NCBI GenBank assembly: GCA_025201805.1
Contig: MU619291.1
Span: 8,397 to 72,396, forward strand
DNA: 64,000 bases
Reading direction: 5' to 3'
From: Parasitella parasitica NRRL 2501
Taxonomy: Eukaryota > Fungi > Mucoromycota
In this document: one piece after another, positions 1 through 54,961 of the stretch
Numbering within the stretch: the stretch's first letter is position 1
How the letters are laid out: each line of letters begins with the position of its first letter
The notes under the pieces: generated by a model
Database searches by the model: none
Seen by the model: the letters and a program-made list of their open reading frames with translations, nothing else
Told to the model about the DNA's origin: nothing
Translations under genes and position numbers: made by a program

Positions 1-299
1 CGATTTTTTGTACTATAATGTATCAATGAAGATTTATGATAACATTTCTAAAGCTAATAGATAATGTGCAGAATTATCTAGTTTGTTAGCAGTGCTTTTA
101 CACTCTAACTGAATATTTGTTTAGTTCTTTTTGATTCAGTGAAGCGAAAACAAAAATATGTGTAACCGCACAAGAGGACTTATTTTAGGTCGCGTAAACT
201 ACTTCATACCAAACGCTTTCTATCACTATCGACACAATGCTTGATATCTCTAGTAGTTATATGAAAACTAAATCTTGATCAATCATTATGCATATAACT

Positions 300-31472: not shown

Positions 31473-34113
31473 ATGTCTCGTTTCTTCCGTAGTTCAGACA
31501 CTGAATCTGACTCTGACACTTCTTCTGACAATGACTCTCAATACTCTCAATCCGATTCTGAATACGATTCCGATGCCGAGAGTTATCACTCTGAAGCTGA
31601 AGAAGAACAACCCAAGAACCGTTTCTTGAAGGGTGGAAGTGATTCTGACGACTCTGACGATGAATCCAGCAATAAACGTCAAGCCAAATCTCAAAAAGAT
31701 AAAAGAATCGAGGAAATGGAAACTGCCGTAAAGGCTATCGAGAATGGTCAAAAGAATAACGACTGGAATTTGATTTCTTCTGGTAATAGGGTTGTTTAAA
31801 CAGGTTACCATGGCAACTGATATTAATTTGCCTCTGGTTCATAGAATTCGATAAGCTTACTGTCGCCACCTCAAGAGCTACTACTGGCTTTAACGCCATT
31901 CCTATGCCCAAGTTTTATATCAAGACTATGGTTGATCTAGAAGATTATTTAACGGATAGTCTTCAAAAGGAAAAAGGCAGTAAGAAAAAGTCATCTGGTA
32001 ACAGCAAGGCCATGAACAACCTGAAGCAGAAACTTAAAAAGCTTGCCAAACAATTTGATGAACCCATCGCTTCTTACAGAAAGGTAAAATTAAATGATAA
32101 CAAGAAAAAAATTTTTTTTATCCGTTGTTAATACTCAATGCTACTTCTGTAGGATCCCGAGGAATTTATGAAGGAAGAGGTGGTTGAGGAAGAGCCTGTT
32201 GCTGCTCCTGCTGCAAATAGAGAAATTCCTAATCAAGTTGCTCTCGAAGATAAAGATGATGGTTTCTCCTCCGTTGGAAAGGGTGGTAAGACTGTCGTTT
32301 CTATCTCTTTCGAGAATGTTTTGGTTCGTTTGAAAGAAATTTTGGAAAGTCGTGGTAAAAAGGTAAAATGACACTTGATGCAGCATTAGATTCATGAAAT
32401 TAAGCAAAAAAAAAAAAAAAAAATACGCTGTAGAACACCAATCGCGAAGAGCAGATTGCTACTTTGGAGGCATTGTTGGAGAATTCCAAGTCGTCTTTCC
32501 AAAAGATTTCTGTTTTATTAGCTCTCATTGCCTCTCGCTTCGATATTACTGCTTCTAAAGCGCCTTATATGGATCTTTCTGTTTGGAAGGCTTCTGCCAC
32601 CGAATTCAATCAACTTCTTCAAATCCTCGAAACTAACAAATCTTTTGTTGTCACTGAAGACGCTGAAGATCTCGACAATGACGATAAAGACGTTGTTCCA
32701 AAGGATGGTGAAGTTATCAAGATTCGTGGTTCTATCCTTAGCTTTGTCGAACGTTTAGATGACGAATTCAACAAGTCTCTTCAAAACATTGATCCCCATG
32801 CTACTGATTACATTGATCGTCTTAGAGACGAGCCTGCTCTCTATGCTATGCTGGACCGCTCTCAACTTTATTTTGAAGTCAATCATATTGACTTTGCTCT
32901 TCCTAGAATCATCTCTCGTAAATTGGATCATGTTTACTACAAGCCTGAGCAGGTTATAGGCTCCCTTCAAGCTGCTAGCAAGCAACTTTTGCCCAGTTAT
33001 GTTGTTTCCAAAATTACGAACACTGAAGACCCTGCCGAGTTTGTTAATCAACTTTGTAACTACCTTTATAAGGACAACTCTTCTGTTTTCCGTACTCGTG
33101 CTATCCTCTGTCATATTTATCACTATGCTCTCCACAAAAAGTTCCACACTGCTCGCGATTTGTTGCTCATGTCTCATGTTCAGGATTCTATCCACCAAGC
33201 TGATATTGGTACTCAAATCTTGTATAACCGTGCTATGGTTCAAATTGGTATCTGTGCTTTCCGTGATGGCCTAATCAAGGAATCTCATGCTGCACTTTCT
33301 GAAATTCAAGGCTCTGGCCGTGTCAAAGAGCTTTTGGCCCAAGGTGTTCAAGCACAACGTTTCGGTCAACCCTCCAACCCTGAGGCAGAAGCCATTGAAC
33401 GTCAACGCCAATTGCCCTTCCACATGCACATCAACTTGGAGCTTCTTGAATGCATTTTCTTGACTTCTTCTATGCTCTTGGAAATCCCTGCTCAAGCACA
33501 GGCTGGACCTAACAACAAGAAATTCATTTCCAGACCATTCCGTAGATTGCTTGACTATAATGAACGTCAAGCCTTCTGTGGTCCTCCTGAAAACACCAGA
33601 GATCATATCATGAGTGCTGCCAAGGCATTGGCTTCTGGTGAATGGGAAAAAGCCAAAGACTTTATTTTAGCTATCAAGGTTTGGGATTTAATGACTGAAA
33701 CTCAAGAAATCAAGGACATGCTCATTCGCAAGATTCAAGAAGAAGGTCTTCGTACCTATTTGTTCACTTACTGTTCTTATTACACTACATTGGGATTGGC
33801 CCAATTGTCCAGCATGTTCGATTTATCTGTCAATAGTGTCTCTGCTATTGTTGCCAAAATGATTTTCAATGAAGAGTTGTCCGCATCACTAGATCAAGTT
33901 ACTCAATGCATTGCTCTCCATCAAGTTGAACTTTCTAGACTCCAAGTTTTGTCTTTGCAATATTCTGAAAAGGTTGCTAACCTTGTTGATCAAAATGAAC
34001 GTTTAACATCCACCGGTAGAGACAACGCAAACACTAACACCAACAATAACAGCAGCAACGTAAATAATATCAGTAACCACAACCACACTCACAACAGCTA
34101 CAGAAATCATTAA
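31473..34113 (+). CDS. NIP1: Translation initiation factor eIF3 subunit c, 4 exons
   Basis: MSRFF plus acidic Ser-rich N-terminus, KSQKDKR, ERLDDEFNKSLQNIDPH, QILYNRAMVQIGICAFR, PFHMHINLELLEC, GPPENTRDH, PCI-domain KIQEEGLRTYL. Confidence 0.97.
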
Positions 34114-35601: not shown

Positions 35602-36678
35602 TACTATTGTTCAGTATACAAATGAAAAAGCATCATTTTTTGTTGGAATTGACGCGTTTGTTTGTGGTTCCAAACTCCTGCGTTTTATGTAGAATTACGG
35701 TACACTGCTTTGTCAAATGCTATTGGCTTGAATTTACATATGCGTAGGCACAAAATTAGTGAAAGTATGCCTACTTGGATGAGTGTATAGCTATGTAAAA
35801 CAGCCTATACGTCAGCTTAATATGATTAGTATTTACTCACTGACCAATACTGTGCTATAATCTAATTTGATAATTAAATGCCAAAGTATGATCTGATTGT
35901 ATTATTCATAGAGTAATTCATGAGAATATATTTTATATACTAGTTTTTTAATAACCATTAATATTAGTAGTTTTGTATTTAATTAATAAATAGTCATTAT
36001 TACTAGTATCTTATTTCTGTTCGACATCAATATCGATATTTTCATGGATAGAAATACTTTTATTATTCCAAATCACTGAGTTGCCGCTATGTTTTCCATA
36101 TTCAATCTCGGGGGGGGGGGAGGGGGTTTCCAGCAGAGACTATGAGCAAACGTTTGAAATTATGAAAATCAAACCTGTTTTTTAATTGCAACGAAATGAT
36201 ACCTATTATTGTCATACCATCAATTATGATTCCCGCCCGATATATATATTGTGGAGATCTACACTGTTGTGCCCGGCCTTGGATATAAGCACAGAAGCAC
36301 TGTTTATGATCAAAGATATAAGAAAGTAATGAAGACTTAATTACCTCATACAACCGTTGATTTTATTGATGAATAATGTGAGTTGTCTATTTATATCAGA
36401 GCAGATTAACAAATTAATTGAAATAATATGAATATACAATTCAGATCCTGGAACGGCTACCTTCACAATTGAGTTAAATAGAGGGGTAGCTATGGTATTA
36501 TATAAGCATACAGCAATTTTATACTGAATTTCTATCTGGTTTCAAGATTGGTAATCTTCCGCAATGATCTCTCAAGCATTATAACTTTTTATTTTTACTA
36601 CCATTCTAGTAACATTTATTATATTATTGAAAGTAACCATTCATTTTACCAAAAATAGAGACGGTCGAGGCCAAATGT

Positions 36679-36771
36679 ATCCAATAAAATAGCTAGAAAT
36701 AGTGTAATGAGCCAATAAAAATGCTAGAAATAGTGTAATGATCCAATAAGAGTGCTCAAAATAGTGTAACT
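36679..36771. repeat. Three tandem 31-bp repeats upstream of the Zisupton-like gene (candidate subterminal repeats)
   Basis: atccaataaaatagctagaaatagtgtaatg / agccaataaaaatgctagaaatagtgtaatg / atccaataagagtgctcaaaatagtgtaact. Confidence 0.85.
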
Positions 36772-37051
36772 GATTATATATTAAAGTAAACACTGCAGAG
36801 TCTGAACATTCTGCCGGCTGTAAAGTAAACAATTCTGTTACCCCGTTAATTGATTGTACCTTTTTCGATTTGACATTTCTACATATAAGTAAATTTTTCA
36901 CTTGAAAGGCTAATTTTCTTTTCTCTTCTTTTCACAAACATATTATTATAAATTCAAGTATGTCTTAAAAAATTTAAGAAAGCATTTTTAAACAATCTTG
37001 GATGTTCGACGAAGCAGTTACTGACTCAATTAATGAAATAAACTAGAAACA

Positions 37052-40000
37052 ATGCCTTACAACACACCTGCAAAGAACGGCCGTCCGACTGGTTCAAAAA
37101 GCAAGCATGGATCCAAGACTCCAGGTCCCAAACCGGCTCATTTAGTGAACCAGCCCCGATTAAGCTTCCCAGTTGCTGTTCAAGCAACAAGAAACATTCT
37201 TGGGAGCGAAACACTATCTGCAGTGGACGCAGTGGCAGTAAACTTAAAACAGCCTTTGAGTAATGAAAAAGATGCAGCAGAAAACATTGATGAGGTGAGC
37301 CATATAGATTTTTTCAATGGTTATGATTTCCTAATGTACTTTATCATAATAGATTGTCGAAGAAGAGACAATCCACAATAAAAAATATCAAGTAATTAAA
37401 GACTTCGAAGGCCTCTCTGTTGACACTGAACACAACGCCATTTCCAATAATAGCGAAAATGAGGTACTACACCAACTTATAGTATGACTGAGTTAGCAAC
37501 CTGATACATTGTTAATTTTAGGCTGACAAGAGTGTTGTCGACAATCAAGCTGAATTAATAAATGAAGGTGATCGATTTGAGAATAACGAAGAAGCAATAG
37601 TCGATGAGCTTACTGAAGAGCAATTTCACTCGATTGAAAATCAAATCTCGGAGATTCCTGAAAATGGATGGCTTGACAAGTATCTTGGGTCAATTCAAGA
37701 GAAGCTCAAAGGTGGTGCCGAACCCGATGAATACAAGAAGGGCACACTATGGATTAATCCTTCTAACGCATCTCTCGTATTAAAGAGAAAATTGGATCCT
37801 GAATTGCTTTACCTGCCTAGAGTGTGCATATGGCTTCCACAATTTCTGGCCAAGACGCCCTTAAAATGCCCAACTTGTCAAAAGTCCCTTCTCGCTAAAG
37901 AATGGGTACAAAAGACAAAGGCCAGAAGAATCATCGATTTGGAAGAGTAAGTCAAACAAATATTTACAATTTTAATTTAAAACTTCTACTACTGGATGCA
38001 TTGACGAATGTCTTTTTTAGCTGCTTCTATCTTTTAAGTGTTAGATTCAAATGTACCAACAAGACAAACGTACATACTTTCATGGGATATCGATCTGAAA
38101 TCGTAAAACAGTTGCCTGCGCATGTTCGAGCTGATTTCCCCGCTGTGTTGACACATCGCTCCGGGTTCTCTACACAGCTCGTGAGATTGTTGCGCCCACA
38201 GTTCCAAAACGCAACTGGCCCCCATAGAATGCACCAAATTCTAAGGATAAACCATACAGAAAGATTTGATACAATTCAGTTCCAGTACTATGATGCTGTA
38301 AAAGACAAGCTAAGAGAACAATTCAAGGCCAAAGCATTAATCGGCAACTCATCACCTGCAACAGTATATCCGAAATTTTCATCATTTGGTGACAAGAATG
38401 GGTATAATGGATATGTACCTTCAGCAAATTATTTAAGTCATGTATACTGCTCTATTATAGCCGAACTAAGACCTTACATGGACCAGCATGCTTCATTGTT
38501 AGACGGTGTCGTCCTAAAAGGAGACCATTCTTTTAAGGTATGATATATACATCACACATAAAATTGTGGTACTCAATTTTTGAACTATAGATCATTGATC
38601 ATATGGCCAAAATAAATGGCGTATCTACGTTTTCCTGTCTCTACACTGTATTGAACGAGTATGAAGAAATTCGTCTTCAAGTGCTCGCGCCCACTAAATC
38701 GTTGGATCATCTGGCTTCTTCTTTTAACAATATGATGGAAAGCTACACCAGATATGGATTTCAGATGCCTGAGGTTTTTTACACAGACAATGTGATTGGA
38801 GATAGATTGTTCCTGGAGTCTGCTATCCCTTCATTGAAAAAGGATGTTGTCCATACCAAGCCCACTCTCGCGGAACAGATCAATACAAATTGCCCATTCA
38901 AGAATTTTCCTTTGGCTGAATTACCTGATAATATTACTGTTTCTGTGTTAGATACGAATGATGCTATAAACCATGCTTGTCAGAAGCTTCTCGATTGTTG
39001 TTTTCAACAGGGCAGTATTGCAATTGGATTTGACTGCGAGTGGGCAGTTCGAGGAGGAAGATCTGCTGTGCCTATAAGCGAACAAGCAAGACTAAAATTT
39101 GTGCCTGTTGCTTTAGTTCAAATTGCTTACCAAGATTTAATCTATTTAATGAGGATACATACGTTTGATCATGACAAACTACCAAAACAATTAAGTGAAC
39201 TGATTGTCAACCCCAAGGTTCTTAAAATTGGAAAGAATGTGAATGGAGATCTTTCAAGGTTCAAGTACTTTGGTATTAATCACTTCCCCGGTCAATTGGA
39301 GCTCGGTACCTTTTGCAAGGATAAGGATCTGATTGAAAGAAGAGGCTCTTCACTTGCTGACATTTGTGGGTTTGTTTTGAAAGTACAATTACCCAAAACA
39401 AACTTGATTCGCTGCGGTAACTGGGAGGCACAGGTTCTAAATGAAGAACAAATCAAGTATGCTGCTCTGGACGCCTGGGTCTCTTTAGAAATCTACAACA
39501 GGTTCAAATCAATGCCTACAGTCCACCAAAAGGTATCGGGAAAAACAAGAGCTAGCTCCTTTGTCGCAGTTCATCTTGAAAATACTGCTAAATCATCAGT
39601 TGCTGCCTTGGGATTTCTATGTGATGATGATTCATCAATTTCTGATGAACAATACGAAGCAGCTGATACGCACGGCGCTGTAAAGATGAAGGTAGTCAAG
39701 ACTATGATTCCTGGTTTTCCGTTGGATTGTTATGATGGTTTGACCTTGAGTGATTTTACTGGTAATCCATGCACCATGTACATCAAATACAAGTATTTAT
39801 TTACGGCGTCAGAAAGGGTTTATTACTCTGCAACCAAACCAGTCGAACCTACCCAACCTGCCATAACTATTCACAATTCAGATGAAGAAACGCCAATTCC
39901 TTCCCGTGTTTTGAAAGATGGCTTCCATTTAATGGACATGATCAAAATCTCCAAGTCCCATGGAATGCATAAAGATTTTATGAGACGCTTCCGTGATGCC

Positions 40001-41594
40001 TTATATGTTTGCGATCAAGGTGACAAAGCTCTCATCGAAACATTTTTATTGAGCACAGGGACCGACTGGAACACACGGATGCTGTCTAACCCTGCTTGGG
40101 TTTTTGAACGAGTCAGAAGATTTATACCAAAACCAGCCAAGCTCTACCCCACTCTGAAATTCTTATTTGATAGCTACGGCCCATTAAGATGTGAGCATTC
40201 TGGTCGCCAGCTTTTTGATGATGCAGCTAGGGAAATGTCTTTACATATTCTTAAATCTGTAAAAGAAGGGCATGTTTCTGATATCGTTGGTGGTCCTGCT
40301 CTCTACACGGAAAAAGGCCTGGATAAGGACGGTTTGATGACCTACAAGTGTTCGCGAGGAACTAGTTCTGTTGAAGGAGCCTGTCATATGAACATTGTTC
40401 GCAGATTCGCATCATATAATGCATCTACGCGATTAACAGATTCTATTTTGGCTGACTATAGACTATATCATAATATAAACGTAAGTGATTTATCTTTTAG
40501 TATGATTTATAATTTAAAAACTTTACTTTTTTTCTTAGGTCGGGTCTGTTAATCGGTATGGCTTAAAGCATCAAAGCCATTATAGCCCTTGGCTCGTACT
40601 TGCCATCAACATGTTAAGAACAGAGGTTGGTCACGGAACTGTAATGGATTACACTTGTGAGCGTTATGGAAATTTTATAAATTTCAAGCAAACGAATGAA
40701 ACCTTCGGTATTGTAGATATGCCTCGTGTGCTATGCAATGAAATAGGCATAAAGCCTGCAACATTGCAGCTAATACCAAAAGAAAGGCCGGACAAAAAAA
40801 GGATTATGGAACTTGCATCCTTGTCTACCATTCGACTGCCACCGATCGGATACTCTAAAAGCAAATTTATGTATCAATTTCTTTCCAGTTGTCAAGGTAC
40901 ACTTTACGCAGTTGCGGCAGTGCACACAAACGAAGAAAATTTTCTGTTTGAAACACTTTTGAAAACACAAAACCACGAAGATACGCAGATATATCAACCA
41001 TTCAATGCAAAAAAACCAGACTTCCATTTGTTTGCCTTCATATGGAACACCAAGTATTGTCTTGCAAACAGCAATATTTATTACAAAACCCCTGGTCATC
41101 TAAGAGCCTACTACAACATTGTAGAAGATCGTAAAAAATATGGGAACACTGTCTTGAAAAATATTGCAATATCTCAATCTGTCCGTGCGCTTGTCGAAGA
41201 TGCATCAAGGTTTGACACTTCGATTCCGACTTTGTCAGCACCTACTGCTCCACAACAACAACACTTTCCTGCTGGTATACTCTCACCTTTGACCTCTAAA
41301 TTACCAAAAATTTTACCTTTGTATCACTCCAGACAGATCTCAAGCTCACTTTCTTTACCTTTGCCGCGTAACATCACTTCTTCTTTGTCTGTTAATTTTG
41401 CAAGTAAAAAAAGAAAAAGACACTGCACGGTTTGCAAGATCGACGAATGTCCAGGAAGCTCCAAAAGATTTTTTGGTATCAACAAATGTGGAAAATGCAG
41501 ACAAGAAAGCTGCACTGGAAGACATGTTAAGCAGCTCAAAACAAATAGACAAAGCTCTTATCAGCCATTACCATGCTTAAACGCTAAATTTTAA
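37052..41594 (+). CDS. Zisupton/KDZ-like DDE transposase (~1413 aa, 6 exons) with an inserted DEDDy 3'-5' exonuclease
   Basis: Exons 37052-37294, 37353-37463, 37522-37946, 38021-38537, 38591-40480 and 40539-41594 splice at GT-AG into one open frame. Features: AT-hook-like KNGRPTGSK; DUF6729-like LW..P / LYLPRVCIWLP / LKCPTC / RRIIDLEDCFYL..RFKC; core GDHSFK, FYTDN, LKDGFH, YKCSRGTSSVEG; exonuclease GFDCEW, NGDL, YAALDA; C-terminal Cys/His cluster. Confidence 0.8.
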
Positions 41595-41744
41595 CTAACA
41601 ATGAGGGGTGAAGATTCCTGCATAAATCTTTAAATACATTTTCCACAATTCATAAGCAAATTAATTTCTTTTACCTCTATTCCTATTCTTTATTTATATA
41701 ATTATTCCAAATAAATTTTTCAAAAATGTCAAATACCCCTTAAA

Positions 41745-41770
41745 ATTTGGGTGCCCTTGGGCACCCAAAT
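41745..41770. other. Perfect 12-bp-stem hairpin ATTTGGGTGCCC-TT-GGGCACCCAAAT
   Basis: Exact reverse complement checked; GC-rich island in AT-rich DNA 150 bp after the transposase stop codon. Confidence 0.9.
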
Positions 41771-41864
41771 CACTGAATTAAATTCTCAAACCTGCTCAAT
41801 TAAATGCTTATTTTCACGAATGGCCCAACTATGGTTATACGGTCAAAATAGACCAAAAAAAACA

Positions 41865-43210
41865 CGTGATGAAATATTTCAATCTCCGCAACAAAAAACG
41901 CGAAAGGATTTTTGCGGATAACTTTTGATAAACAGGTCACCCAAGAAAAATAAAGTTATGCTCAAATAGCGATGATCAAGCGTGTTCTTATGGNNNNNNN
42001 NNNNNNNNNNNNNNNNNNNNNNNNNNNNNNNNNNNNNNNNNNNNNNNNNNNNNNNNNNNNNNNNNNNNNNNNNNNNNNNNNNNNNNNNNNNNNNNNNNNN
42101 NNNNNNNNNNNNNNNNNNNNNNNNNNNNNNNNNNNNNNNNNNNNNNNNNNNNNNNNNNNNNNNNNNNNNNNNNNNNNNNNNNNNNNNNNNNNNNNNNNNN
42201 NNNNNNNNNNNNNNNNNNNNNNNNNNNNNNNNNNNNNNNNNNNNNNNNNNNNNNNNNNNNNNNNNNNNNNNNNNNNNNNNNNNNNNNNNNNNNNNNNNNN
42301 NNNNNNNNNNNNNNNNNNNNNNNNNNNNNNNNNNNNNNNNNNNNNNNNNNNNNNNNNNNNNNNNNNNNNNNNNNNNNNNNNNNNNNNNNNNNNNNNNNNN
42401 NNNNNNNNNNNNNNNNNNNNNNNNNNNNNNNNNNNNNNNNNNNNNNNNNNNNNNNNNNNNNNNTATTCTGTTCTTTATCGAAGCCTATCGTCGATTATAT
42501 GCAATCCTGATATGTAAATTTGTGATATCATCTGATAACTTTATAGATATCGATAAAATCAAGGATACCAATGTTGTTTCCAGATAGCCCCAAGTCAATG
42601 CTAAGTTTTTCAAGTTAGATCATGGTTCTATGATCATTTTAGCACAAGTTATGAGTACAAATCTGATATTTATGATCTGTTTTAATGTAGGATAGGAGAT
42701 CATGATAATGTACTTCAATTAAAGATTGGAAATTGTCCAATGATGAATTGTATTGTGATACTTGTCAAGACAGGAGAATAATGTCTTTGTTTCAAATCAA
42801 GAAGGTTATCTTCTGTAACACAGATCTGTATGATTGACAAAGAATACGGTTCTGTCAGATCAAAGATCTATAGCCTTGTAGTATAATAATACATCCTACC
42901 CTGTTAAGGATATGATGTTGCTTGTAAATTATTCTCATTGATTAGTATCGACTAGTATTTTAAATAAGTCACCAAAAATTTATGTAGCTGTAAAAAGCAT
43001 AAATAGCAGATGCAAACTTGAATTTTTAATAAAGTAATATCAAGTTTTCGTATCTCGTTAATTCAACGTTTTATTTTATAATTTTCTTTTTTCGATCTTG
43101 CAGATCTCAACAATTTATGATGAATATTGAAAAATAAAACTGTTTTTGCAGATAACTTTTGATAGAGACATTGTCCAGTGGAAGGCAAGTTAAGCTCAGA
43201 TAGCGATGAT
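41865..43210. repeat. Diverged ~100-bp direct repeat pair on either side of the gap (~41865-41976 and ~43118-43210)
   Basis: tttttgcggataacttttgataaaca...aagttatgctcaaatagcgatgat vs tttttgcagataacttttgatagaga...aagttaagctcagatagcgatgat. Confidence 0.75.
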
Positions 43211-45066
43211 AATTTTAATCATTACTCGCTTTGAATATATTCTGGTAAACCTTCCTTGAGGAATGAGTAGATTATATATTATATAAGGATGAGGGAGTTT
43301 GGGATACACTACAGTTGACTATGTTAGCAATCTTTACTGCGTAAGGTAATATTTTTATTGCAAACCAGTATCAGTAAATTTGCTAACATTAGCACTGTTT
43401 ACTTTTCATTTATCAATTTTTATTACTTAATCCGATGAAAAACATATATTTATTTTTTATTTAAATAAAAAAAGCAAAAGTTTTTAAATTTGGAGTCGTG
43501 AATCTGTCAAACGAAACAACTATTCTATTGCATATGCAATGCTAGACCTTTTTGTATATTCATAATAATTCGAACCACATATGTGATTGAACTCTTAAAT
43601 GGCATTTATACCAAAATATGTATTGCAAATTGTGATGGAGTACAATTATCTAGTAGTAAGGGTAGAATGATGTACTATGTTAATGGACGGTTGGTGTATC
43701 TAATTGTTGACATTGCTATCAGGGTTATTACTTACTATATAATATATGTAGATATTATTGGACAAGAAGTAATTGACAGCAATGCGGCGATGTTTATATG
43801 AACTATAAACTTATATGTAAACAACGATTGGTAGTGACAGATCAGCTTTTCAGTGATAAGGATGATTTATAGATAATAGATTTGCTAGTATATGAGAAAT
43901 GTTTATGGTAATAAACTATAGTAGCTATTACAGATATTTTCACTAGCGTTCCAATATCTGGTAAAGGTTGAACCTATTTATAATAATTGGATGTTTCATG
44001 CAAAATGAGACATCATATAATGTGAATCATTACACAAATACAGTTCATACTGCATATGCGCCACTTTCTATTATAATACATATGTTTATTAACTCAACTC
44101 ACATCTGAGAGACTCATATCTTAAATCTTGCAAAAGAACTAGCTGATTAATAATTTGGATCAAAATCAAATCTCAGTGACAATGTATTGTACTTGATATA
44201 ATATATCATAAAGCGAGCATGAGTAGAAATGCGTAGTAAAATGGGATGACTTTACTTAAACATGGGAAAGAGACATGTGTGGTGCTATTGGATGGCTGAT
44301 CTTTACTCTAGTGCAGGGTGGTGATAGCCTATGACATTTTGTTCCTGAAAACGGTGTTAAATCCTGATGAATGTTCTTCCACCAAATCTACTATGAAGAA
44401 CATCCTATCCTTTATACGCATCCGAGCTCTTGTATTGCTGGTGATTGGTAAACTCTTATACATCAAGCTCCTATAGATTGGTTCAAGGTGTATCCAATTA
44501 TCCCTGATCCTATATCAAGGCCCTATTGCTGCGACACTGTCAAATAACCATTAGTACCTTTGAAACATGAATTATTTTAAATGTTCATTTAATCTTGGAG
44601 TAGCTAAATAAATACATGCAATTCTAATTGTATTTTTTCTGTCTATATTTCGCTATTGTAAACAACTATAAACAGCTATTAGTTTTTGATATTCCAGAGG
44701 ATGCCTCGTCAGTCATCTCATCAATTTTCTGATTCTTCTTGAAGTAAAGACAATCTCTTCCGCATTTAATCAGGTTTTTGTTTCTTCTGTGCATCTTCGT
44801 TATTATATAACACAGATCTCTGCGAGTTTGCATCATTGACTAGGTTTTTATTCATAAAGTTTTTATTCATAAGTTTTTTGTTCATACATAAATTCGTTAC
44901 TAAATAATGGGCATTATTAAACGAGGTTATAAAATATAAAAAAGATTGGTCGGGTGTCATAAAAATAAAGGAGGTGTTTGTGTCATATACATAAAACGAA
45001 AGTTATTTGGGCATATTCATAAGAAAAAGTATTTGGATCAATTAAAAAAGAATCGAGTAAATATAT

Positions 45067-46422
45067 TTACGTGCGATTTTCAAAACATTTGATTTCCACC
45101 AAATTGGGATTCAATACTTTGACAGCAATATCGGCAAAACTATTTTGCAATCTAATGATTTCGTCTTCCAAAATATTGTCGGCATCACTAGTATCAAAAG
45201 TTTTTGTGAGCACAGCTTCCCTCTGGAGAGAGCCGTACGTAACAATAATTCGTACCAAATCATCGTGATTTTGGCGGACGTCGTTCAAGGTAGTTACTAA
45301 TGAACCATTTTGATAAATCATGTTGACATAAATGACGTTATCATGCTGTTGTATATCACCGTCAGTTTGAAATTCTTCTTGAGTAACAGTAGCTTCCAAA
45401 GAAGTAACGCCAGTTCGAATCTGTGCTTGAGCAATAATAGCTTCAAGCGGATTATTTTGCTCGGTATGAATTACCAATGTGTATTCAGGAACCATTCGAA
45501 GGGCATCGGTTACACGCTCAACTATTGCGCTTTTAGGAATGGCGTGTGTTCCTTGGAGTACTATTTCATAATCTGCAATATTAATCAAAGCCTTCCTGAT
45601 TGAATACTTCAAAGCGAGATACTCAACAATACTCGGGTAAATGCAGTTCTCAATTGTCAAGTATTCTAAAGTAAATTCATTCGTGTTTCTGTCTTGAGGA
45701 AATTGATTAAGGACTTGCTCCGTTGTCATTTCAGCGGTAGTAAAAGCACTACAGCTTACATCCAATACTTGCAAAAAGGGACAGTTGTTTACAGCCAAAT
45801 TCAAAGCATTGACATCGGATCGGTTCATCGTAATTGATAGTTCCTTTAAGTTTGTAAAGAATTTGATTTCGTTGAGAAATTTCTTCTCACTATCAGACTC
45901 TTGATCAAAAATCATAAGACAAAGTTCTTCCAAAGTATCTTGGAGGTGTAATGCTACTTTTTGGTATCCCGACGATTCTAGTTCTACAGGCAATGGAATC
46001 CTTCTTAGTGCAAATTTTGCTCCAGGGTTCTCTTGGATGATTGTCAGCATTTGCTCATAGGATTCAGCATCGTCATAGTCTCCGGCAAGTCTTTCCAGTT
46101 TTTTGTTGAAAATCAATGGGAGTAACTTTTTACAAGCTGTTTCGTTGAGATCATTGAATCGATTGTCAATCGTCTCATCCATACAGCAATTGATGCTTAG
46201 ATTTCTGAGAGACCCTCTTAGCTCTTTGTATTTATTCAAATATTCGTAAAAGCTCCATGCTGTTCTCTTCTTCCCAATAAAAATAGAACAACCCAGCATC
46301 GTCTTGATTGCATGCGGTTTCCAAAGCTTGCAGACTAATTCCACTTGATTTAGTGTCTCTAGATCGTTTATAAAGTAAAAGATCCGGAGCAAAATTTCAG
46401 CTGGTAAATTTTGGATTGACAT
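45067..46422 (-). CDS. F-box protein with degenerate LRR/RNI-like repeats (paralogue 1, intronless, most divergent)
   Basis: MSIQNLPAEILLRIFYFI..LNQVELVCKLWK F-box; LxxLxL repeats (LEELCL, LKELSI, CPFLQVLDV, LEYLTI). Start chosen by alignment to the paralogues. Confidence 0.85.
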   Translation of the reverse strand: MSIQNLPAEILLRIFYFINDLETLNQVELVCKLWKPHAIKTMLGCSIFIGKKRTAWSFYEYLNKYKELRGSLRNLSINCCMDETIDNRFNDLNETACKKLLPLIFNKKLERLAGDYDDAESYEQMLTIIQENPGAKFALRRIPLPVELESSGYQKVALHLQDTLEELCLMIFDQESDSEKKFLNEIKFFTNLKELSITMNRSDVNALNLAVNNCPFLQVLDVSCSAFTTAEMTTEQVLNQFPQDRNTNEFTLEYLTIENCIYPSIVEYLALKYSIRKALINIADYEIVLQGTHAIPKSAIVERVTDALRMVPEYTLVIHTEQNNPLEAIIAQAQIRTGVTSLEATVTQEEFQTDGDIQQHDNVIYVNMIYQNGSLVTTLNDVRQNHDDLVRIIVTYGSLQREAVLTKTFDTSDADNILEDEIIRLQNSFADIAVKVLNPNLVEIKCFENRT

Positions 46423-46520
46423 TGGGACTAATGTGTGCCTGTATTTTTTCATGAAAAAAGAGACGAAGAAAACGAATCTTGGTGTCATTTTTTCTTGTAG
46501 TTTATAGTGACATTGGGATA

Positions 46521-46550
46521 TGTCATGAGTTCCCATCTCAAAATGAACAC
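46521..46550 (-). promoter_or_regulatory. Conserved F-box promoter motif TGTCATGAG-N~11-AATGA (copies at 46521, 48414, 52811; partial at 53472 and 55137)
   Basis: The same bipartite motif lies ~100-140 bp upstream of the ATGs of paralogues 1-3, just upstream of a TATA-like tataa on the minus strand. Confidence 0.6.
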
Positions 46551-47108
46551 ACAAAATCATCAATCGCTATTTCATCTTATAATTAACACACAGGGTCATA
46601 GGTATATAATCATGCCACAATGAACACTTCTGGCTATTGGTTACTTGTCAAAGCATGATGTTATGCACAATTTATACCACATTGCTCTGGTTATATGCAT
46701 GTACATCATTCTATCTTGGTTTGCTATTGTTGCGAAATTGTATATTATGCAGGTCAAGTACGGTTTTGCCAAAGATAATGGTCTTAATGCAAGTTAGTCG
46801 TCAAGGAATTTCTCCATTCTTTAAAATTGAATGAACAGTATATTAATGATCTAAAAATTGGTCTGCCAAGTATTCATCCAGGGATAGACGGCCAGTAAGT
46901 ACGTAACTACGTATTGCGATTGTGAGAAACAAAATTTAAGCGGAAGATCGTGTGGTTTACATAAAGTTTTAGTCGTAGTTTTTATTAAATCGTATCTTTA
47001 AGGAATGTGTTGGCTTTGCCTGTGATTCATAGAGTAGAGAAAAATAAAAATAATTGAACGAAACTAAAACAAAAATAAGGATATAGAAAGGAGTGATCTA
47101 TAAAAACG

Positions 47109-48305
47109 TTATTCTCGACAAGGTCGAACCTTGAGAATCATCAATTCTTGATCATCAGGCGATCTAGCAAGCTCAGCATGGTTTCCTCCAATTTTTGCAA
47201 GCGACGCCACATCGTCTAAAGGATTGTATTGGTGGTGAGGATAAAACTCCATTTCATACGATGACACTGTACTCGTATTAAGAGCTTCTATTACACGCAA
47301 ATGTAGGTTTTCAATGAAGCCCTCTTCATTGGCATCTTCTTCTGCTTCATTAAAATGTCTCTCAGCTTCTGCATGACTTGCGTAAGATGTCATATCAATC
47401 AATACCGTTTCAATTTTCATATACTTCAAAACTAGATATTCGATTGGGGCCGCAGAAAAACAGTCTGACACCAGCAAAGATTTCAACGAGCAAGTATTTT
47501 TAGTGTCATGTTCGTTAAACCATTCTTGAGCTTCTTGAGACCAATTGATATCTTCAATATATTCAATGTCTAACTCCTGTAGTGTGCAACAGTTATCCAC
47601 AATGATTTTTAATGCAAAGAAGTCATCTCCTTTGATATTAAGTTCCAGTGATGTTAAACATTTAAAGCTTTTGAGACTTTCAAAGAAGTTCATCTCACAA
47701 GGTTGCATGTAATGAGAAATCCAGAGCTTCAGATAATTTAAGCTTCCCTTAAACAAAAGAGCTGCGTCTTTGTAAGCTGCTGAATTTGACATACTAGGCT
47801 TTGGCAATTTTTTTAGCTTGAATGTTTCTTTGTCATTATCTTTTTTAGCATAATCTGCAACAAGGCTTGAAATTAATTGGTAACAACCATCATCCATAGT
47901 TCCATCGAGCACCTCTAGCTTTGAAGTAAAAACCAATGACAGAATTTTTTTGTAGTAATCTTTTTTTTTGTTGGCGCTCTCTTCGACCTCTCCAAGATTT
48001 TTAATCTGATTGTTTTGTTGATTAACTTCATTAGAATAATAGCCCTGAGATTCGTCAAGATTACTGAAATCGGTGACCCACAGGTTCCTCACTTGACTTT
48101 TGAAGCACTTGTTTTTGCTCAAATAGCTGCAAAACCCTTTAGCTTGTTCTTCGTTGTAAATGTATATAGGCTTGCTAAGTATTTTCCACAATGCGACTTT
48201 ATTCCAGGCCTTGCAAACCAATCTATATTGCACCAAGTGTTTGACATCATGAATTGAGTCAAACACGGTCATTAATACTTCTGTGGGTAATTTTAAGATA
48301 GACAT
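47109..48305 (-). CDS. F-box/LRR-like protein (paralogue 2, intronless)
   Basis: MSILKLPTEVLMTVFD..LVQYRLVCKAWN; shared blocks ILSLVFTSKLEVLDG, FKLKKLPKPSM, IVDNCCTLQELDI, IEYLVLKY, ENLHLRV. Confidence 0.88.
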   Translation of the reverse strand: MSILKLPTEVLMTVFDSIHDVKHLVQYRLVCKAWNKVALWKILSKPIYIYNEEQAKGFCSYLSKNKCFKSQVRNLWVTDFSNLDESQGYYSNEVNQQNNQIKNLGEVEESANKKKDYYKKILSLVFTSKLEVLDGTMDDGCYQLISSLVADYAKKDNDKETFKLKKLPKPSMSNSAAYKDAALLFKGSLNYLKLWISHYMQPCEMNFFESLKSFKCLTSLELNIKGDDFFALKIIVDNCCTLQELDIEYIEDINWSQEAQEWFNEHDTKNTCSLKSLLVSDCFSAAPIEYLVLKYMKIETVLIDMTSYASHAEAERHFNEAEEDANEEGFIENLHLRVIEALNTSTVSSYEMEFYPHHQYNPLDDVASLAKIGGNHAELARSPDDQELMILKVRPCRE

Positions 48306-49571
48306 TGACGTATACAAAGTAGATGCTGTAACTGGTATGTGCTTACAGAAAGATACTAATACCAAAAAGTTTGATACAATTTCATTATATAATGATATAT
48401 TAGTGTTTTGACTTGTCATGAGTTATTATTTTACAATGAACATGCAGAATCATGATGAAGACATATAATTTATTTACAATAACTCTATTATGAAATCGCA
48501 TGACTATTGGTTTGTTTGTAAGGCAGGATGATTTATGCGGTATGATACCATTCCGAGAATACCAGATCTTATTTATAAGTTGGCTTTGCTGTATGTCTGC
48601 ATTATGCAGCATTAAATGTAGATCACGAGCGACCAAGCTGGTGAAACGGCAAATAAAATTCTACGAGATTGACTCTCGTCTAAAAGGGCTATCAGCTCAA
48701 ATGCGAACAGATAAAGGAAGCGTTAAATGTTCTTTATCACAATTTATACAAAGAATCATGCAACGTGTATAGGAGTTCATAGTGGAGAAACAATCGCCAA
48801 AAATCTCCAAGACGTTTTAATGAAGTAACCATTTGAATGACTTTCTCATAAGATGCTCGATGAAAATTGGTTTTGTGCATCTAAAGCTTATGCAAAAAAT
48901 AAATACTACTAGTGGTAGGGTAATTCCTACGAAAACAATGGCTGTGGATGTGTACTCGGGATCATCAGCGACCTAGATTGGCCATACCCGTCCCCCCTTC
49001 CTCCATCTTAGTTCTCGTTTTCTGCCTGCTTGATGTGCATCTAATGTAGAAAGAGGCTATTGTCTCCAATAGTTTATAGTGCAAAAAGATGGCTGCAATA
49101 GATAATGGCATTAAGGAATATAACCACATAATGAATTGATGTCTAAAAAGAATCTAAACCCTCTGGAGACTCCTGCTCAAAACTAAGCTTTTAAGAAACT
49201 AAAATGCAGTTTCCTTGTACGCTAATAAATCACTCAGAAGAAGAGTAGGAGCTTTTTTCAGCTTGAATTTTATGTACGCATGTTCACTTGGGCTGTATTT
49301 GACATATGCCGGTAGGCATGATCATCGCTCCTGTTTCTGTCCATCAACCCCAAGTTTTTTTTACCTTGTCAAGGTTGCGTTCATCAGCATCACGATTATA
49401 AAGTTTCTCAAATACGCAACGCCATGTTCACAAAGGCCAGCGATGTAAAGAAAACCACATTTTTTCATCGTTATTCGTTGTAATCTGTAATGGTTTCCTA
49501 GTTTCAACATGATGATGATATAAGCAAGCAATTTTATGAGCCACCACACACAATTAACACACATGATCATA

Positions 49572-50894
49572 CCCGTGGGTAAAGATAAGTCACCGTCCTT
49601 TTTAATTTCCTTTATTTTTCAAATAAAAACAAGTAGAATACTCTTCAATCAAACGCTCTTTTATCACTACTCCATAAATACAACTGATTATGACTTTAAC
49701 AGATATTACCAACGACCATCGTACAATTCGTAAACAACTTGACGATTATACATGTGGGCTCATTATCGGCAGATATCAAGCCAAACAAAAGATCACTCAA
49801 ATTTCACGTGAAATGTGCTTGCCAAAGTCGACCGTTACTGATTGTGTCAATCGCTACAATAAAACAGGAAGTGGAGTAATCCAAAAACGTAGCGGAAGAC
49901 CTCTTAAGTTGTCTGAAAGAGATCAGCGTACTGTTGTGCGCAGCTTTAGAGAGAAACCATTTGATTCTTTTGTCACTCATAACGCAAGATTGAAAGCAGC
50001 TGGAATTGATATACATCCTCAAACGCTATCGATATATGCTGACAGACACGGCTTTGGGTCATATTCCCCAGCATCTGTACCAATGCTGAAACCCAAGCAA
50101 ATCGAAAAAAGACTTGCTTGGGCCAAAGAAAAGGTTAATTGGACAGCTGAACAATGGNNNNNNNNNNNNNNNNNNNNNNNNNNNNNNNNNNNNNNNNNNN
50201 NNNNNNNNNNNNNNNNNNNNNNNNNNNNNNNNNNNNNNNNNNNNNNNNNNNNNNNNNNNNNNNNNNNNNNNNNNNNNNNNNNNNNNNNNNNNNNNNNNNN
50301 NNNNNNNNNNNNNNNNNNNNNNNNNNNNNNNNNNNNNNNNNNNNNNNNNNNNNNNNNNNNNNNNNNNNNNNNNNNNNNNNNNNNNNNNNNNNNNNNNNNN
50401 NNNNNNNNNNNNNNNNNNNNNNNNNNNNNNNNNNNNNNNNNNNNNNNNNNNNNNNNNNNNNNNNNNNNNNNNNNNNNNNNNNNNNNNNNNNNNNNNNNNN
50501 NNNNNNNNNNNNNNNNNTGAACATGTCTGGGCTTACCTTGAAAAGCGGATAGAGAGTCGTAGATACCAACTGAAGAATGTGGATCAGTTGGAGACTTGTA
50601 TTCGCAACGAATGGTATGCAATACCTCCATCATTTTTAGAGACTTTAGTCGACAGTATGAGCTCTCGATGCAAGGCTGTTATTGAGGCTAATGGTGGCAA
50701 TACCAGATATTAATTTTAATTTTTTTTTGCTATATTACTAAAATAAACATGTTAAGCTTTGTATACTTCAAATCTTATACGATTATATTGATATTTCACT
50801 AATAAGTTTTTTCAATCAAAAAACATTTCAAAACTTGAATTTAATTTCTGACACCAAAAAGTAAAAAAGGACGGTGACTTATCTTTACCCACGG
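49572..50894 (+). mobile_element. Tc1/mariner DNA transposon, ~1.32 kb, 31-bp TIRs, TA flanks
   Basis: ccgtgggtaaagataagtcaccgtccttttt (49573-49603) is the exact reverse complement of 50864-50894. TA at 49570-71 and 50895-96; one extra C on the left end. Confidence 0.92.
49690..50713 (+). CDS. Tc1-family transposase (middle hidden by gap 50158-50517)
   Basis: HTH (ITQISREMCLPKSTV), RSGRPLKLSERD, KRLAWAK..NWTAEQW, then after the gap EHVWAYLEKRI...W..IP...LVDSMSSRCKAVIEANGGNTRY*. Confidence 0.92.
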
Positions 50895-51479
50895 TATATG
50901 CATATTGTTCTAATAAAAAAGATGCACGGCAATAGATTTTCTGTCAAAGACCAATACGTAGTGACACATTATTAAATAGTTACAAGCAAAAAAAAAATTA
51001 TATGTATGTATGTAAATTATGTATATGCTCTGCATTTATTGCAGTACGTTCGTAGCATACGAAGTAAGAATACGTGATTGTTGTCATAAATCAATAGCGA
51101 CAATGTTAAAGGGATAATAATATATGCTAAACTGCCCCTTGATATAGTCTTTTCCTTTAGCTTGCTTGGGTCATCTCAATGTACGGCGTCTGACAAACAA
51201 AATAACTATGTATTTTTATAGATAATTATTTAGGGGCAAGCTTTAGGACGACCATTACTGACGATTTCTTTCAAAACAAAATTGTGTATACAAGTCCAAA
51301 ATTTAACGAGTGTCCATAAGGCATAAATATTTTATTCATAAAATTTACTTGTATTATGGTTGGCATAAGAAACTGTTGTATAATTTACATAGAAATGTGT
51401 GTATTTGAATTAAAATAAATAAACGAGAGAGTTTGGAGCGTATCAACAATAAAAAGGAATTGCAATGCTTGTAAGAGTT

Positions 51480-52700
51480 TTAGTGATCATGAAGCCTAAC
51501 CTCGATGTGCGCCATATCGGGAGGGAAAATTTTGATTGTGGTGTTGCTATCAACAGTTTGTGCTGCAGCAAGCACATTTTCCAACGGGTTGGACTCATTA
51601 AACCTGAATTTAAGGCTGTATACAGATACTTTCTTAAGGGCTTCAACTACACGCAAATGAAGGTTTTCAAAGGTACCAAGTTCAATTTCTCTTCGAGCAT
51701 CTGCGTGATCAATGTAAGACCTCATATCCATTAAAACGCTCTCAATTTTCGCATACTTCAAAACGAGATAGTTTAAAGGGATACAAGAAAAACAATTTGA
51801 GATCTTCAAAAATTTCAAGGAACGGGTATTCTGAGTGTCATGCTCATCAAACCATTCTTGAATTTGCTGCGTTGTTGACCGATTACTGTCTTCAATCCAA
51901 TCAATGTCCAATACTTGCAATTGACAGCAACTGTCCACAATAAGCTTCAATACATAAAGACTGTTTCGCTCGATGGTCAGCTTAAGAGATTTTAATCGTT
52001 TAAAATCTTTGAGCTTTTCAAACAAGATAGTTTCTGCGGGAGGTTCCAGGCGAGAAATCAGAATATACAAGTGTTCTAAGCTACCCGTAAACCAAAGTAC
52101 AGCCTCTTTGTAAGCGTCAGACTCTTGTACACTAGGATTTGGGATCCATTTAAGCTTGAATTTCATTTTGCTTTGGTTTTTTTCTGCAATACTCGACATT
52201 ATCTGATACGAGTAATCATCGTTCATATCTCCATCAATTACGAGCAATTTTGAAGTGAAGACCAATTGCAGGATCTTCACACAGAGATATTCTTCACTAC
52301 TTGGATGTTCCCGAGTCTCTTCGATATCTTCATACCAGTCAATACGTTCTGGATTTTCGTTCTCTAGATCTTCGTTTTCTGGATCCTCATCCTCTGTATC
52401 TTCTTCTGAATCTCCTGTAACTTCCTCGATATCTTTGGCATAAGCTTTGTCGTAGGCTTTTCGGCCAGTAATGTTCAGGAATCTTACCAAATTGGCGGTT
52501 TCTTCATCTCTAGTCAAATCTTTGAAAAATTCCAAAGCTTTTTGCTCATTATCAATACGTATAGGTTTGCTAAACAATACCATCTTGGCATTTTTGTACC
52601 AATCCCTGCAAACCCATCTACACTGCCTCAAATCTTTGATCTCATTTACGAAATCAAACACATTTAATAAAATTTCAGCAGGTAGTTTTGTTATGGGCAT
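51480..52700 (-). CDS. F-box/LRR-like protein (paralogue 3, intronless)
   Basis: MPITKLPAEILLNVFDF..LRQCRWVCRDWY; long acidic insert; PNPSVQESDAYKEA, CCQLQVLDIDWIE, NCFS, LVLKYAKIE. Confidence 0.88.
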   Translation of the reverse strand: MPITKLPAEILLNVFDFVNEIKDLRQCRWVCRDWYKNAKMVLFSKPIRIDNEQKALEFFKDLTRDEETANLVRFLNITGRKAYDKAYAKDIEEVTGDSEEDTEDEDPENEDLENENPERIDWYEDIEETREHPSSEEYLCVKILQLVFTSKLLVIDGDMNDDYSYQIMSSIAEKNQSKMKFKLKWIPNPSVQESDAYKEAVLWFTGSLEHLYILISRLEPPAETILFEKLKDFKRLKSLKLTIERNSLYVLKLIVDSCCQLQVLDIDWIEDSNRSTTQQIQEWFDEHDTQNTRSLKFLKISNCFSCIPLNYLVLKYAKIESVLMDMRSYIDHADARREIELGTFENLHLRVVEALKKVSVYSLKFRFNESNPLENVLAAAQTVDSNTTIKIFPPDMAHIEVRLHDH

Positions 52701-53848
52701 TGAAAAGACTAATACTCAAATTGAAGGTGCCTCGATTATTATAAAAAGAGACAGAAAGAAAACATATCCTACTGCAATTTTCTCTCAGCATTTATACCAG
52801 TAAACTACTTTGTCATGAGCTTTCATTTTACAATGAGCGCACATCGATAATCAACTTTTGGTATCGTGATTAACGCGCAGAGTCGTTAGTTTACAATGAT
52901 TTCAAATTATCATATGGGCTTGACATTTAAAAGTACAATATAATGCTTTTTCCACAAGAATTGTAGCTTAATAAATGTGAAACGATAGCAGTAAAGATTG
53001 GTTGAAATAAATAGTTAAAACAGCAAATGATTACAATAGAGCAGAAATACTTGCTTATGCAACTATATAAGTATCTTTTACGGATCCCATTCATAAATTT
53101 ATGTATAATTAATTGGAAAAGTTAGATTTATAAAATCGAAAAATAAAAAATGAGCCCATATTTATATAATCGAATATAGAAGATGAGTAAGTTTTATGAA
53201 CCATACAGAAAAGAGCAGAGTTGAAGTTTACAAACTTATACTTGTCTGATGTCTCCTCTTTTTGATTGCCCTAAGTAGCCAGAGATCCAGAGATTCTAGT
53301 AAGAGGCAGTCGTACTTGAGGAATACAATAATTGTATCAAATCATATTAAAAAGATAATAAGAAAGGACAAGAAATCAGAAATAGGTGTAATATTAAAAA
53401 AAAAATTGCACTTCATTCTCCTTGTCTTACTGCCATTTTATCTTATGATATATCATATTTGACTCATTGATTGTCATGAGTTGTTATTCAATAATAATCT
53501 CACAGTACTATAAATTAGTGCCTAGCACATAAACACTCACGAGACTATATTTAATAGTCAATATAATGGAATAGAATAATTAGTATTTCATGAATCAATG
53601 TATGATAAACAAGCAAAATGACCATAATCTACCAAAAAGTAATTGTGAAATCAGATCAGGCCTAATAATTACCATACACATATCGTAAAATTTATTGGGC
53701 ATATTTGTAAGGAATGTGTGAAAAACTGTGATTCAAAAATTAACATAAGAAACGAATGTTCATACTTAAACGACGGTAGATAAATGAAAGTATCTGGATC
53801 ATACATTTAAAAAAGAGGGCATAATGTATATGGTAGTTCATAAAAGCT

Positions 53849-54961
53849 TTAGTCTCGGTGGCGAGGTGCAACCATGATAGTCTTCAAATTATTGCCGCTA
53901 GGCGAGTTGCTAACATTAACAGAGTTCCCAAGAGCAAGTACAGCGAAAATAATATTCTGCAAAGGATTGAATTGTTCGTCTGGAAGAAAAGTGATATCAT
54001 ACAAAGCAACCTTTTCGTTCAGAGCTTCAACTAAACGTAAAATCACGTCCTCAGCGATAATTCCATTAGCGACGGCGGCTTCTACATGATCTGTGTAGGA
54101 ACTCATGTCAATTGAAACCTTCTCGATCTTTGCATATTTCAAAGTGAGGTACTCGATGGGAGTAGAAGAAAAGCAATTTGCGACCTTCAAAACTTTCAAT
54201 GAGCAAGTGATGCTGGTATCATTTGTTCTAAACCACTGTTGAACCTCCTCTCTTGTCATGTCGCCTACACTTTCAATCCAACCAATGTCCAATTCTTGTA
54301 GATGAGGACAGCCATTTACAATCTTTTGAAGCTCAAAAAGATTGTTTTGCTCCATAGAAAGAGAGATCGATGTCAAGCACGTAAGACTTCCGAGCGAATC
54401 AAAGAGACGCACACTGGCTTCAGATCTTTCTTCAGTTATCAAAAGATAGAGATGCTCAAGACTTTCTTTAAAGCAAAGAGCTGCCTCTTTGTAAGCATCT
54501 GATTCTTGCATGCTAGGATCCGGCATTCTTTTCAATCTAAATCTGTTGTTACTTCGGGTGGCAACATCCAACACCAAATTGTAAGAGTAGTCATCGTCCA
54601 CATCTCCGTCAAGAACCTCCAGATTTTCATGAAAAACCAACGACAAAATTCTTTTGCAAGGATTTCCTTCATCATCATCAAGATTGTCTTCGCCATTCAT
54701 GTAGTCCCAGTCATAAATATCACGACCAGCAATCTTCAGATTTTTGACATGACGCTTCAACCTCTCATTTGTGGACAAAAAGTTGAAAAATCTCCACGCT
54801 TGTTCCTCGCTTCCAATGAGGATAGGCTTCCCAAGCGCCGCCTTCGTTGCGGGCGCACACCAATCCTTGCAAACCAAACTACATTGTATCAATTGTTTGG
54901 CATCATCAATGAAATCAAACATACATAACAATGTTTCAGTGGGCAATTGTAGTATAGACAT
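53849..54961 (-). CDS. F-box/LRR-like protein (paralogue 4, intronless)
   Basis: MSILQLPTETLLCMFDF..LIQCSLVCKDWC; PDPSMQESDAYKEA, CPHLQELDIGWIE, NCFS, LTLKYAKIE. Confidence 0.88.
   Translation of the reverse strand: MSILQLPTETLLCMFDFIDDAKQLIQCSLVCKDWCAPATKAALGKPILIGSEEQAWRFFNFLSTNERLKRHVKNLKIAGRDIYDWDYMNGEDNLDDDEGNPCKRILSLVFHENLEVLDGDVDDDYSYNLVLDVATRSNNRFRLKRMPDPSMQESDAYKEAALCFKESLEHLYLLITEERSEASVRLFDSLGSLTCLTSISLSMEQNNLFELQKIVNGCPHLQELDIGWIESVGDMTREEVQQWFRTNDTSITCSLKVLKVANCFSSTPIEYLTLKYAKIEKVSIDMSSYTDHVEAAVANGIIAEDVILRLVEALNEKVALYDITFLPDEQFNPLQNIIFAVLALGNSVNVSNSPSGNNLKTIMVAPRHRD

Follow-up and report, generated by a model that had tools for sequence, protein, structure and literature searches.

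The 64,000-nucleotide stretch of Parasitella parasitica NRRL 2501 DNA analyzed here (assembly GCA_025201805.1, contig MU619291.1, positions 8,397 to 72,396; hereafter, the window) carries at 37052–41594 a gene whose putative transposase is interrupted by a 3'-5' exonuclease, and the question it raises is whether this gene belongs to a mobile element and, if so, to which family and by what route that element inserts. [quoted passage not shown] About six near-identical dispersed copies with target-site duplications (TSDs) were found; dispersed copies in the genome were 98–99% identical, older copies were 80–92% identical, and further subfamilies had about 38% protein identity. In two DNA runs, the element was covered about 6–7 times as deeply as its flank; its sequence was next to absent from several runs bearing the same species label. 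The dispersed near-identical copies bear out the sequence-only reading, an earlier note made from the letters of the window, in so far as it described a multi-copy mobile DDE transposase with a DEDDy exonuclease between the second catalytic aspartate (D2) and the DxxH motif. Metagenome scans were blank.

The open reading frame (ORF) comprised six exons separated by five GT..AG introns (53–74 nt) of compatible phases, with no internal stops, and the spliced exons totaled 4242 nt, i.e., 1413 aa and a stop. The single stop-free protein assembled earlier from six canonical GT-AG exons was thus confirmed by splicing and a phase check, and the first aspartate (D1), D2, the exonuclease, DxxH and the catalytic glutamate (E) all lay where they had been placed. 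The interval 37052–41594 holds the whole ORF but not the whole element, which occupies 36660–41844. The features of the gene are as follows.

37052..37294, plus strand: exon 1, with a GRP AT-hook-like motif
37353..37463, plus strand: exon 2, acidic
37522..37946, plus strand: exon 3, first part of DUF6729 (Pfam), with CPTC
38021..38537, plus strand: exon 4, rest of DUF6729 (Pfam) and catalytic D1 at 38523
38591..40480, plus strand: exon 5, with D2 at 38786, the exonuclease, DxxH at 39917–39928 and catalytic E at 40373
38948..39511, plus strand: WRN/EXD2-type DEDDy 3'-5' exonuclease with complete catalytic residues (Pfam PF01612)
40539..41594, plus strand: exon 6, with a C-terminal Cys/His cluster at 41424–41525
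37295–37352, 37464–37521, 37947–38020, 38538–38590 and 40481–40538, plus strand: introns 1 to 5, GT..AG

In an exon-by-exon Pfam search, DUF6729 was matched on exons 3 (E 8e-6) and 4 (E 3e-10) and DNA_pol_A_exo1 on residues 120–307 of exon 5 (E 6e-15), as anticipated, whereas the KDZ/Mutator-like DDE domain also expected was not matched, no KDZ or MULE model being found on any exon at E ≤ 1. The exonuclease motifs were located at 39032 (ExoI D), 39248 (D of NGDL) and 39458 (YAALDA). The proposed check of the junctions against RNA reads was borne out in part: the GT..AG joint of intron 5 occurred in a single run, presumed to be RNA, was absent from the DNA runs and possibly originates from another copy; spliced joints of introns 1–4 appeared in none of the runs examined. 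In run X7, four CT..AC joints at window positions 37939–38475 represented spliced antisense transcripts; their source is apparently a diverged truncated copy, and they are a possible candidate source of double-stranded RNA.

The homology of the dispersed copies stops at two points outside the gene, and terminal inverted repeats (TIRs) and TSDs, which had been expected at the copy flanks, were found there.

36660..41844, plus strand: whole Dada element, 5185 bp, bounded where the homology of dispersed copies stops
36652..36659, no strand: left copy of the 8-bp TSD AAAATAGA, identical to 41845–41852
36660..36672, plus strand: left TIR, damaged, 13 nt instead of 23 nt by comparison with four other copies
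36681..36773, plus strand: three 31-bp subterminal repeats, each starting with CCAAT
41745..41770, no strand: perfect 26-bp subterminal palindrome with 12-bp arms, the same sequence occurring in Mucor saturninus
41822..41844, minus strand: right TIR of 23 bp, matching the intact left TIR at 15 of 23 positions
41845..41852, no strand: right copy of the TSD AAAATAGA

Three more left ends and three right ends paired by exact 8-mers (GAAAGTCA, TGATTTGA and CACAAAAT), giving four TSDs in the window's own genome, three of them paired across contigs broken inside the element. Outside this genome, Mycena pura had two copies sharing 99.9% identity along 6.1 kb; each was flanked by a separate 8-bp TSD and had a TIR of 20/24. 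The loci of Trametes, Mycena floridula, Agrocybe and Panaeolus each had an 8-bp TSD and a TIR. In all, 8-bp TSDs with imperfect TIRs of 23–24 bp were found in ten insertions from six species (four in the own genome and six in basidiomycetes). When the flanks of different loci were cross-paired as a control, at least 16/24 matches were reached in 1 of 42 pairs and at least 20/24 in none of 42, so the two weakest basidiomycete TIRs (16 and 17/24) are less secure. All ends had G as the first base and T at position 14, mostly with GGC or GAC at the start and YAT at positions 12–14. No credible ends were found at the Ephemerocybe, Phascolomyces and Backusella loci, and a pattern search for non-autonomous MITEs with the ends of the window element found none.

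Compared with the left ends of four other copies, that of the window copy had a net deletion of 10 bp. In two runs, 36150–36696 was spanned by a unique contig with 0 differences, and the lesion is therefore real and not an assembly error. The window copy can probably supply transposase, although the deletion may have immobilized it. CCAAT repeats similar to those of the window were present at the left ends of the relatives in Mucor hiemalis and in a subfamily with a dead exonuclease, and in the latter a different palindrome, of 30 bp, occupied a comparable position near the right end. In the M. hiemalis relative (L062, 2490–13006), approximately 10.5 kb separated the recognizable ends and the flanks did not share a TSD; this locus is possibly composite.

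Assignment to Dada was made by comparison with the sequences published by Kojima and Jurka in 2013 (PMC3706591, with Dada-1_LB and Dada-U6_DR in Dataset S1), who had already reported the exonuclease-bearing architecture in the Dada elements of Laccaria bicolor and Ectocarpus and suggested that the nuclease processes 3' ends. The architecture with an exonuclease in the core is thus real but already known. Dada-1_LB showed by eye the same order of elements (GRP, IIDLE..YYLISVRYRC, IDHSHK, IFTDN, an exonuclease ending in YAALDAW, LKDIFH and RGTNFTEG); the D/D/E triad with DxxH after D2 could be aligned to Dada, the DEDDy exonuclease lay between D2 and DxxH as in the fungal and algal members, and the D1–D2 spacing was 70 aa compared with 68 in Dada-U6_DR. 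In the N-terminal CCCC finger, CPTC was present and the second half was FKC, with the last Cys missing (homologue consensus YxCxxC), and the spacing of the C-terminal Cys/His cluster was unlike that of the CCHC finger of Dada-U6_DR. The window element is assigned to Dada on the strength of the identity between its protein and those of the published fungal members; the superfamily is on record from four fungal phyla (PMC5751038). No fungal Dada ends, 8-bp TSD, target motif or junctions were found in the literature searched; Repbase and subscription reviews lay outside that search and may list ends.

Several observations weigh against this identification and against the ends given above. The comparison with Dada was made by eye. 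Dada of animals and Perkinsus lie inside multicopy small-RNA genes, with TSDs of 6–7 bp and no TIRs (PMC3706591, PMC8869645), whereas here the TSD was 8 bp, TIRs were present and no tRNA or Rfam match to a small-RNA gene target was found in the window. Moreover, three of the four own-genome TSD pairs join ends on different contigs, and an empty site was found neither among paralogous repeats nor in a run lacking the element. It should be noted that small-RNA targeting, the 6–7-bp TSD and the lack of TIRs are described for all animal and Perkinsus members with defined ends and are not established for fungal ones. Since the terminal and target features of animal Dada were not found, the clade is best regarded as a Dada variant. 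By eye, the four own-genome insertion flanks were unrelated.

At E ≤ 0.001 there were 3519 clusters of homologues, many of which probably match only in the exonuclease. The named ones came from Mucorales, Agaricomycetes, Sporobolomyces and a chytrid and were mostly called "hypothetical protein" or "3'-5' exonuclease", the latter being the label that the sequence-only reading had foreseen from automated annotation. In the aligned homologues, D2 and DxxH were conserved in 41/41, and among the sequences reaching them, E was conserved in 39/39 and D1 in 36/37. The literature search returned no paper mentioning DUF6729. One chytrid protein of 3352 aa (P0004) contained three repeats, each comprising an OTU protease, DUF6729 and the exonuclease, which suggests tandem copies of a Dada that carries an OTU domain.

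The folds were modeled on relatives rather than on the window protein, namely, the single-exon paralogue L005 (D1 to E; mean pLDDT 87) and the database protein P0037 (pLDDT 90), an insert-free homologue with 13 aa between D2 and DxxH that is possibly a deletion derivative. In the L005 model, the insert matched the WRN exonuclease (Z 27 against 19; TM by target 0.92), and the flanking halves together matched the ISCth4 transposase (Z 13.9, model range 1–641). The best match of P0037 was also ISCth4 (Z 14.7 over 254 residues, next 10.0; Foldseek E 1.7e-4), ahead of integrases, the P element and Hermes. An RNase H fold around the exonuclease, as previously proposed, is thus predicted in the models of these relatives.

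According to the proposed mechanism, the transposase would bind the two unequal ends and join them to the target at positions staggered by 8 bp between the strands, a motif beyond the right end (considered below) would fix the site and orientation of insertion, and the exonuclease would serve as an accessory trimming the 3' ends of intermediates or donor flanks. Excision could proceed through an end-joined circle as in IS256, rather than through a simple double-strand cut. The cut-and-paste mode assumed earlier was not established, and the fold and junction evidence is compatible with the circle pathway. An IS256-like copy-out/paste-in process, in which an attack by one end some 6 bp away from the other creates a circle whose junction then integrates with an 8-bp TSD, is a serious possibility, although somewhat short of even probability. 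ISCth4, to which the closest solved fold belongs, has junction spacers of 6–8 bp with the best integration from a 6-bp spacer, 8-bp TSDs and imperfect TIRs (PMC7780238). In the sister subfamily with a dead exonuclease (71% nucleotide identity to a paralogue in the window genome), right–left junctions were present in four samples, and their 6-nt spacers were of four different sequences; one contig carrying its 5359-bp unit (L070–L077, public contigs with P0262) was circular, and in another case two units stood head to tail. However, these junctions come from assembled contigs only, and the subfamily of the window copy showed none. Similar junctions would also arise from tandem dimers or if excised linear DNA were joined end to end, and in animal Dada, tandem copies with a 6-bp TSD between them are known. 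One member of the L070–L077 cluster is filed under a Sporosarcina bin and is probably fungal contamination.

The exonuclease insert has the predicted fold of the WRN/EXD2 clade together with the ExoI, ExoII and ExoIII residues, and DEDDy was complete in 38 of 41 aligned homologues. Relative to the C128 copy, its dN was 0.026 and its dS 0.154 (synonymous sites were saturated relative to M. hiemalis), and by these rates the exonuclease is under purifying selection. In the dead-exonuclease subfamily, the catalytic residues were all lost, with the DDE residues, DxxH and ends intact and an identity of 99.8% across samples; insert-free forms also occurred among the same fungal proteins, in a tree whose deep branches were weakly supported. 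Since dead and absent versions occur, the exonuclease appears to be accessory and dispensable for mobility. Trimming of the 3' DNA ends of intermediates or donor flanks is its somewhat favored role. It is rather unlikely that it acts instead on RNA, i.e., on small RNAs or transcripts in counter-silencing. Nibbler/mut-7, EXD2 and RNase D are among its structural neighbors, dispensability for mobility would be expected of a counter-defense accessory, and the spliced antisense transcripts of a diverged copy agree with such a role; nevertheless, the WRN DNA exonuclease is by far the best match, and the exonuclease is predicted by the model to lie in a loop directly after D2, near the DNA path.

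With respect to target choice, the insertions are oriented: 18 bp separate the right end from a CACGTG, CATGTG or AACGTG motif. In the window, the relevant features are as follows.

41863..41869, plus strand: CACGTGA, the target motif, +19..+25 past the right end
41855..41993, plus strand: start of an unrelated high-copy host repeat containing the motif and running into an N gap

Each of the four sites confirmed by a TSD had one of the three hexamers at +19..24 past the right end and none at the mirror position on the left, and six left flanks were all without the motif. In two held-out species, in which the right ends were placed by similarity to the right end of the window element, the same offset carried CATGTGA (Mucor hiemalis) and CACGTGA (Mucor saturninus) in unrelated flanks. 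The background frequency of the motif was 7–9e-4 per position, the 32.8-Mb genome contained just 984 occurrences of CACGTGA, counting both strands, and a permutation test of the motif offset gave P 0.02 with three independent sites and P 2e-4 with four. At a decayed right end (C2), the motif was 5 bp further out. It is very improbable that the motif is due to chance or is a by-product of nesting in one repeat: the sites are few, the motif was first seen post hoc and one old copy is without it, but the identical offset in two held-out species with unrelated flanks, the permutation result with four independent sites, the rarity of CACGTGA and its absence from the six left flanks (0/6) argue otherwise. 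The target rule itself is weakened by four observations: the old C65 copy has no motif at +19..24, two of the four own-genome motif sites sit in one host repeat family, both held-out Mucor sites (2/2) are without a matching TSD partner, and none of the six basidiomycete sites (0/6) has the motif at that offset, no other common target motif being seen among them. Pseudo-end targeting, based on GTGA of the left TIR at offset 6, was rejected as weak and not conserved in M. hiemalis. The high-copy repeat is non-coding (41855–41993 and 42464–43213, depth about 200 times that of the flank), begins with AAAAACACGTGA, has no Rfam match and takes Dada insertions at its edge.

There is about an even chance that the transposase reads the motif directly and in this way fixes the site and orientation. 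Action through a host bHLH factor bound to the E-box-like site is a plausible but less probable route; tethering to a host factor, of which Ty3 with TFIIIB is an example, was considered because CACGTG, CATGTG and AACGTG are presumably all bHLH E-box variants. Direct reading is regarded as at least as likely as a host factor because fish Dada is thought to read primary sequence. A full scheme for fungal Dada, which would combine an IS256-like circle, integration in fixed orientation and at a fixed distance at a bHLH E-box and an optional exonuclease, is speculative and rather improbable as a whole; if true, these elements would be a eukaryotic counterpart of promoter-targeting bacterial Mutator-like elements.

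The sequence-only reading had assigned the protein to Zisupton/KDZ, and this is largely refuted by the Dada alignment, such a transposase now being extremely unlikely. The protein is a large Cys-rich fungal transposase, and Zisupton also has TIRs and 8-bp TSDs (PMC12730594), features in which several superfamilies are alike and which are not diagnostic. However, the motifs listed there for Zisupton/KDZ are almost letter for letter those of Dada-U6_DR (YVDRDCC, LDVWHF and CARGSTSLESFH; PMC3706591 Dataset S1), the window protein differs from Zisupton/KDZ in its motifs and parallels Dada-1_LB along its length, and no KDZ-type Pfam domain was matched on the exons (E ≤ 1) or on full-length homologues (E ≤ 0.05). 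Equally improbable are a single-copy exonuclease gene, whether of the host or domesticated, and a split into two genes: despite the naming of relatives as "3'-5' exonuclease" and the damaged left end of the window copy, these readings are refuted for the family by the TSD-flanked dispersed copies, by the several runs under the same species label with almost none of the sequence and, as regards two genes, by the location of the exonuclease, D2, DxxH and E in one exon. The window copy alone may have been domesticated later.

Elsewhere in the window, an ORF at 32464–34113, resembling by eye eIF3 subunit c, represents an ordinary host gene upstream of the insertion, and several intronless ORFs of 370–500 aa lie on the minus strand at 45067–54961.

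With defined ends, a TSD and a target rule, fungal Dada, known in the literature searched mainly from protein sequence, becomes a testable system. Target choice in Dada need not involve small-RNA genes, and the findings suggest a form with TIRs and motif guidance as a possible origin of the strict gene targeting of animal Dada. The natural exonuclease-active, -dead and -absent versions offer a comparison for the 2013 proposal on the nuclease, and proteins with DUF6729 and PF01612, widely annotated in fungi as host exonucleases, are transposases. The circle pathway, if true, would extend copy-out/paste-in chemistry to eukaryotes, for which no report was found in the literature searched.

Among known systems, Dada-1_LB, Dada-2_LB and Dada-1_ES are similar to the window element in domain order, motifs, introns, a length of about 1400 aa and a complete DEDDy exonuclease between D2 and DxxH. 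In the paper on Laccaria and Ectocarpus Dada (PMC3706591), termini were given only for copies in small-RNA genes, whereas here the termini, TSD, TIRs and motif are resolved, and variants with a dead or absent exonuclease were found in addition. The animal and Perkinsus Dada (Dada-U6, -U1, -tRNA and -5S) share the D..D..DxxH..E core, the RGS/T-x-x-x-E motif and sequence-directed, one-sided target choice, but have no exonuclease. KolobokD (PMC9587614) is likewise a C/DxxH transposon with a DnaQ-type exonuclease; however, that exonuclease is of the DEDDh type, the targets are TTAA and the superfamily is another one. ISCth4 of the IS256 family has the closest solved core fold to the models of the element's relatives, although ISCth4 and the IS256 family (PMC7780238), TnGBS and ISLre2 are prokaryotic, with about 400 aa, 12% identity, no exonuclease and no introns. 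A close functional analogy to the oriented, fixed-distance insertion described here comes from the bacterial Mutator-like elements TnGBS and ISLre2, whose target is the sigma-A promoter: they always insert the same way round, some 16 bp away, and it is the right end that faces the promoter (PMC3942029).

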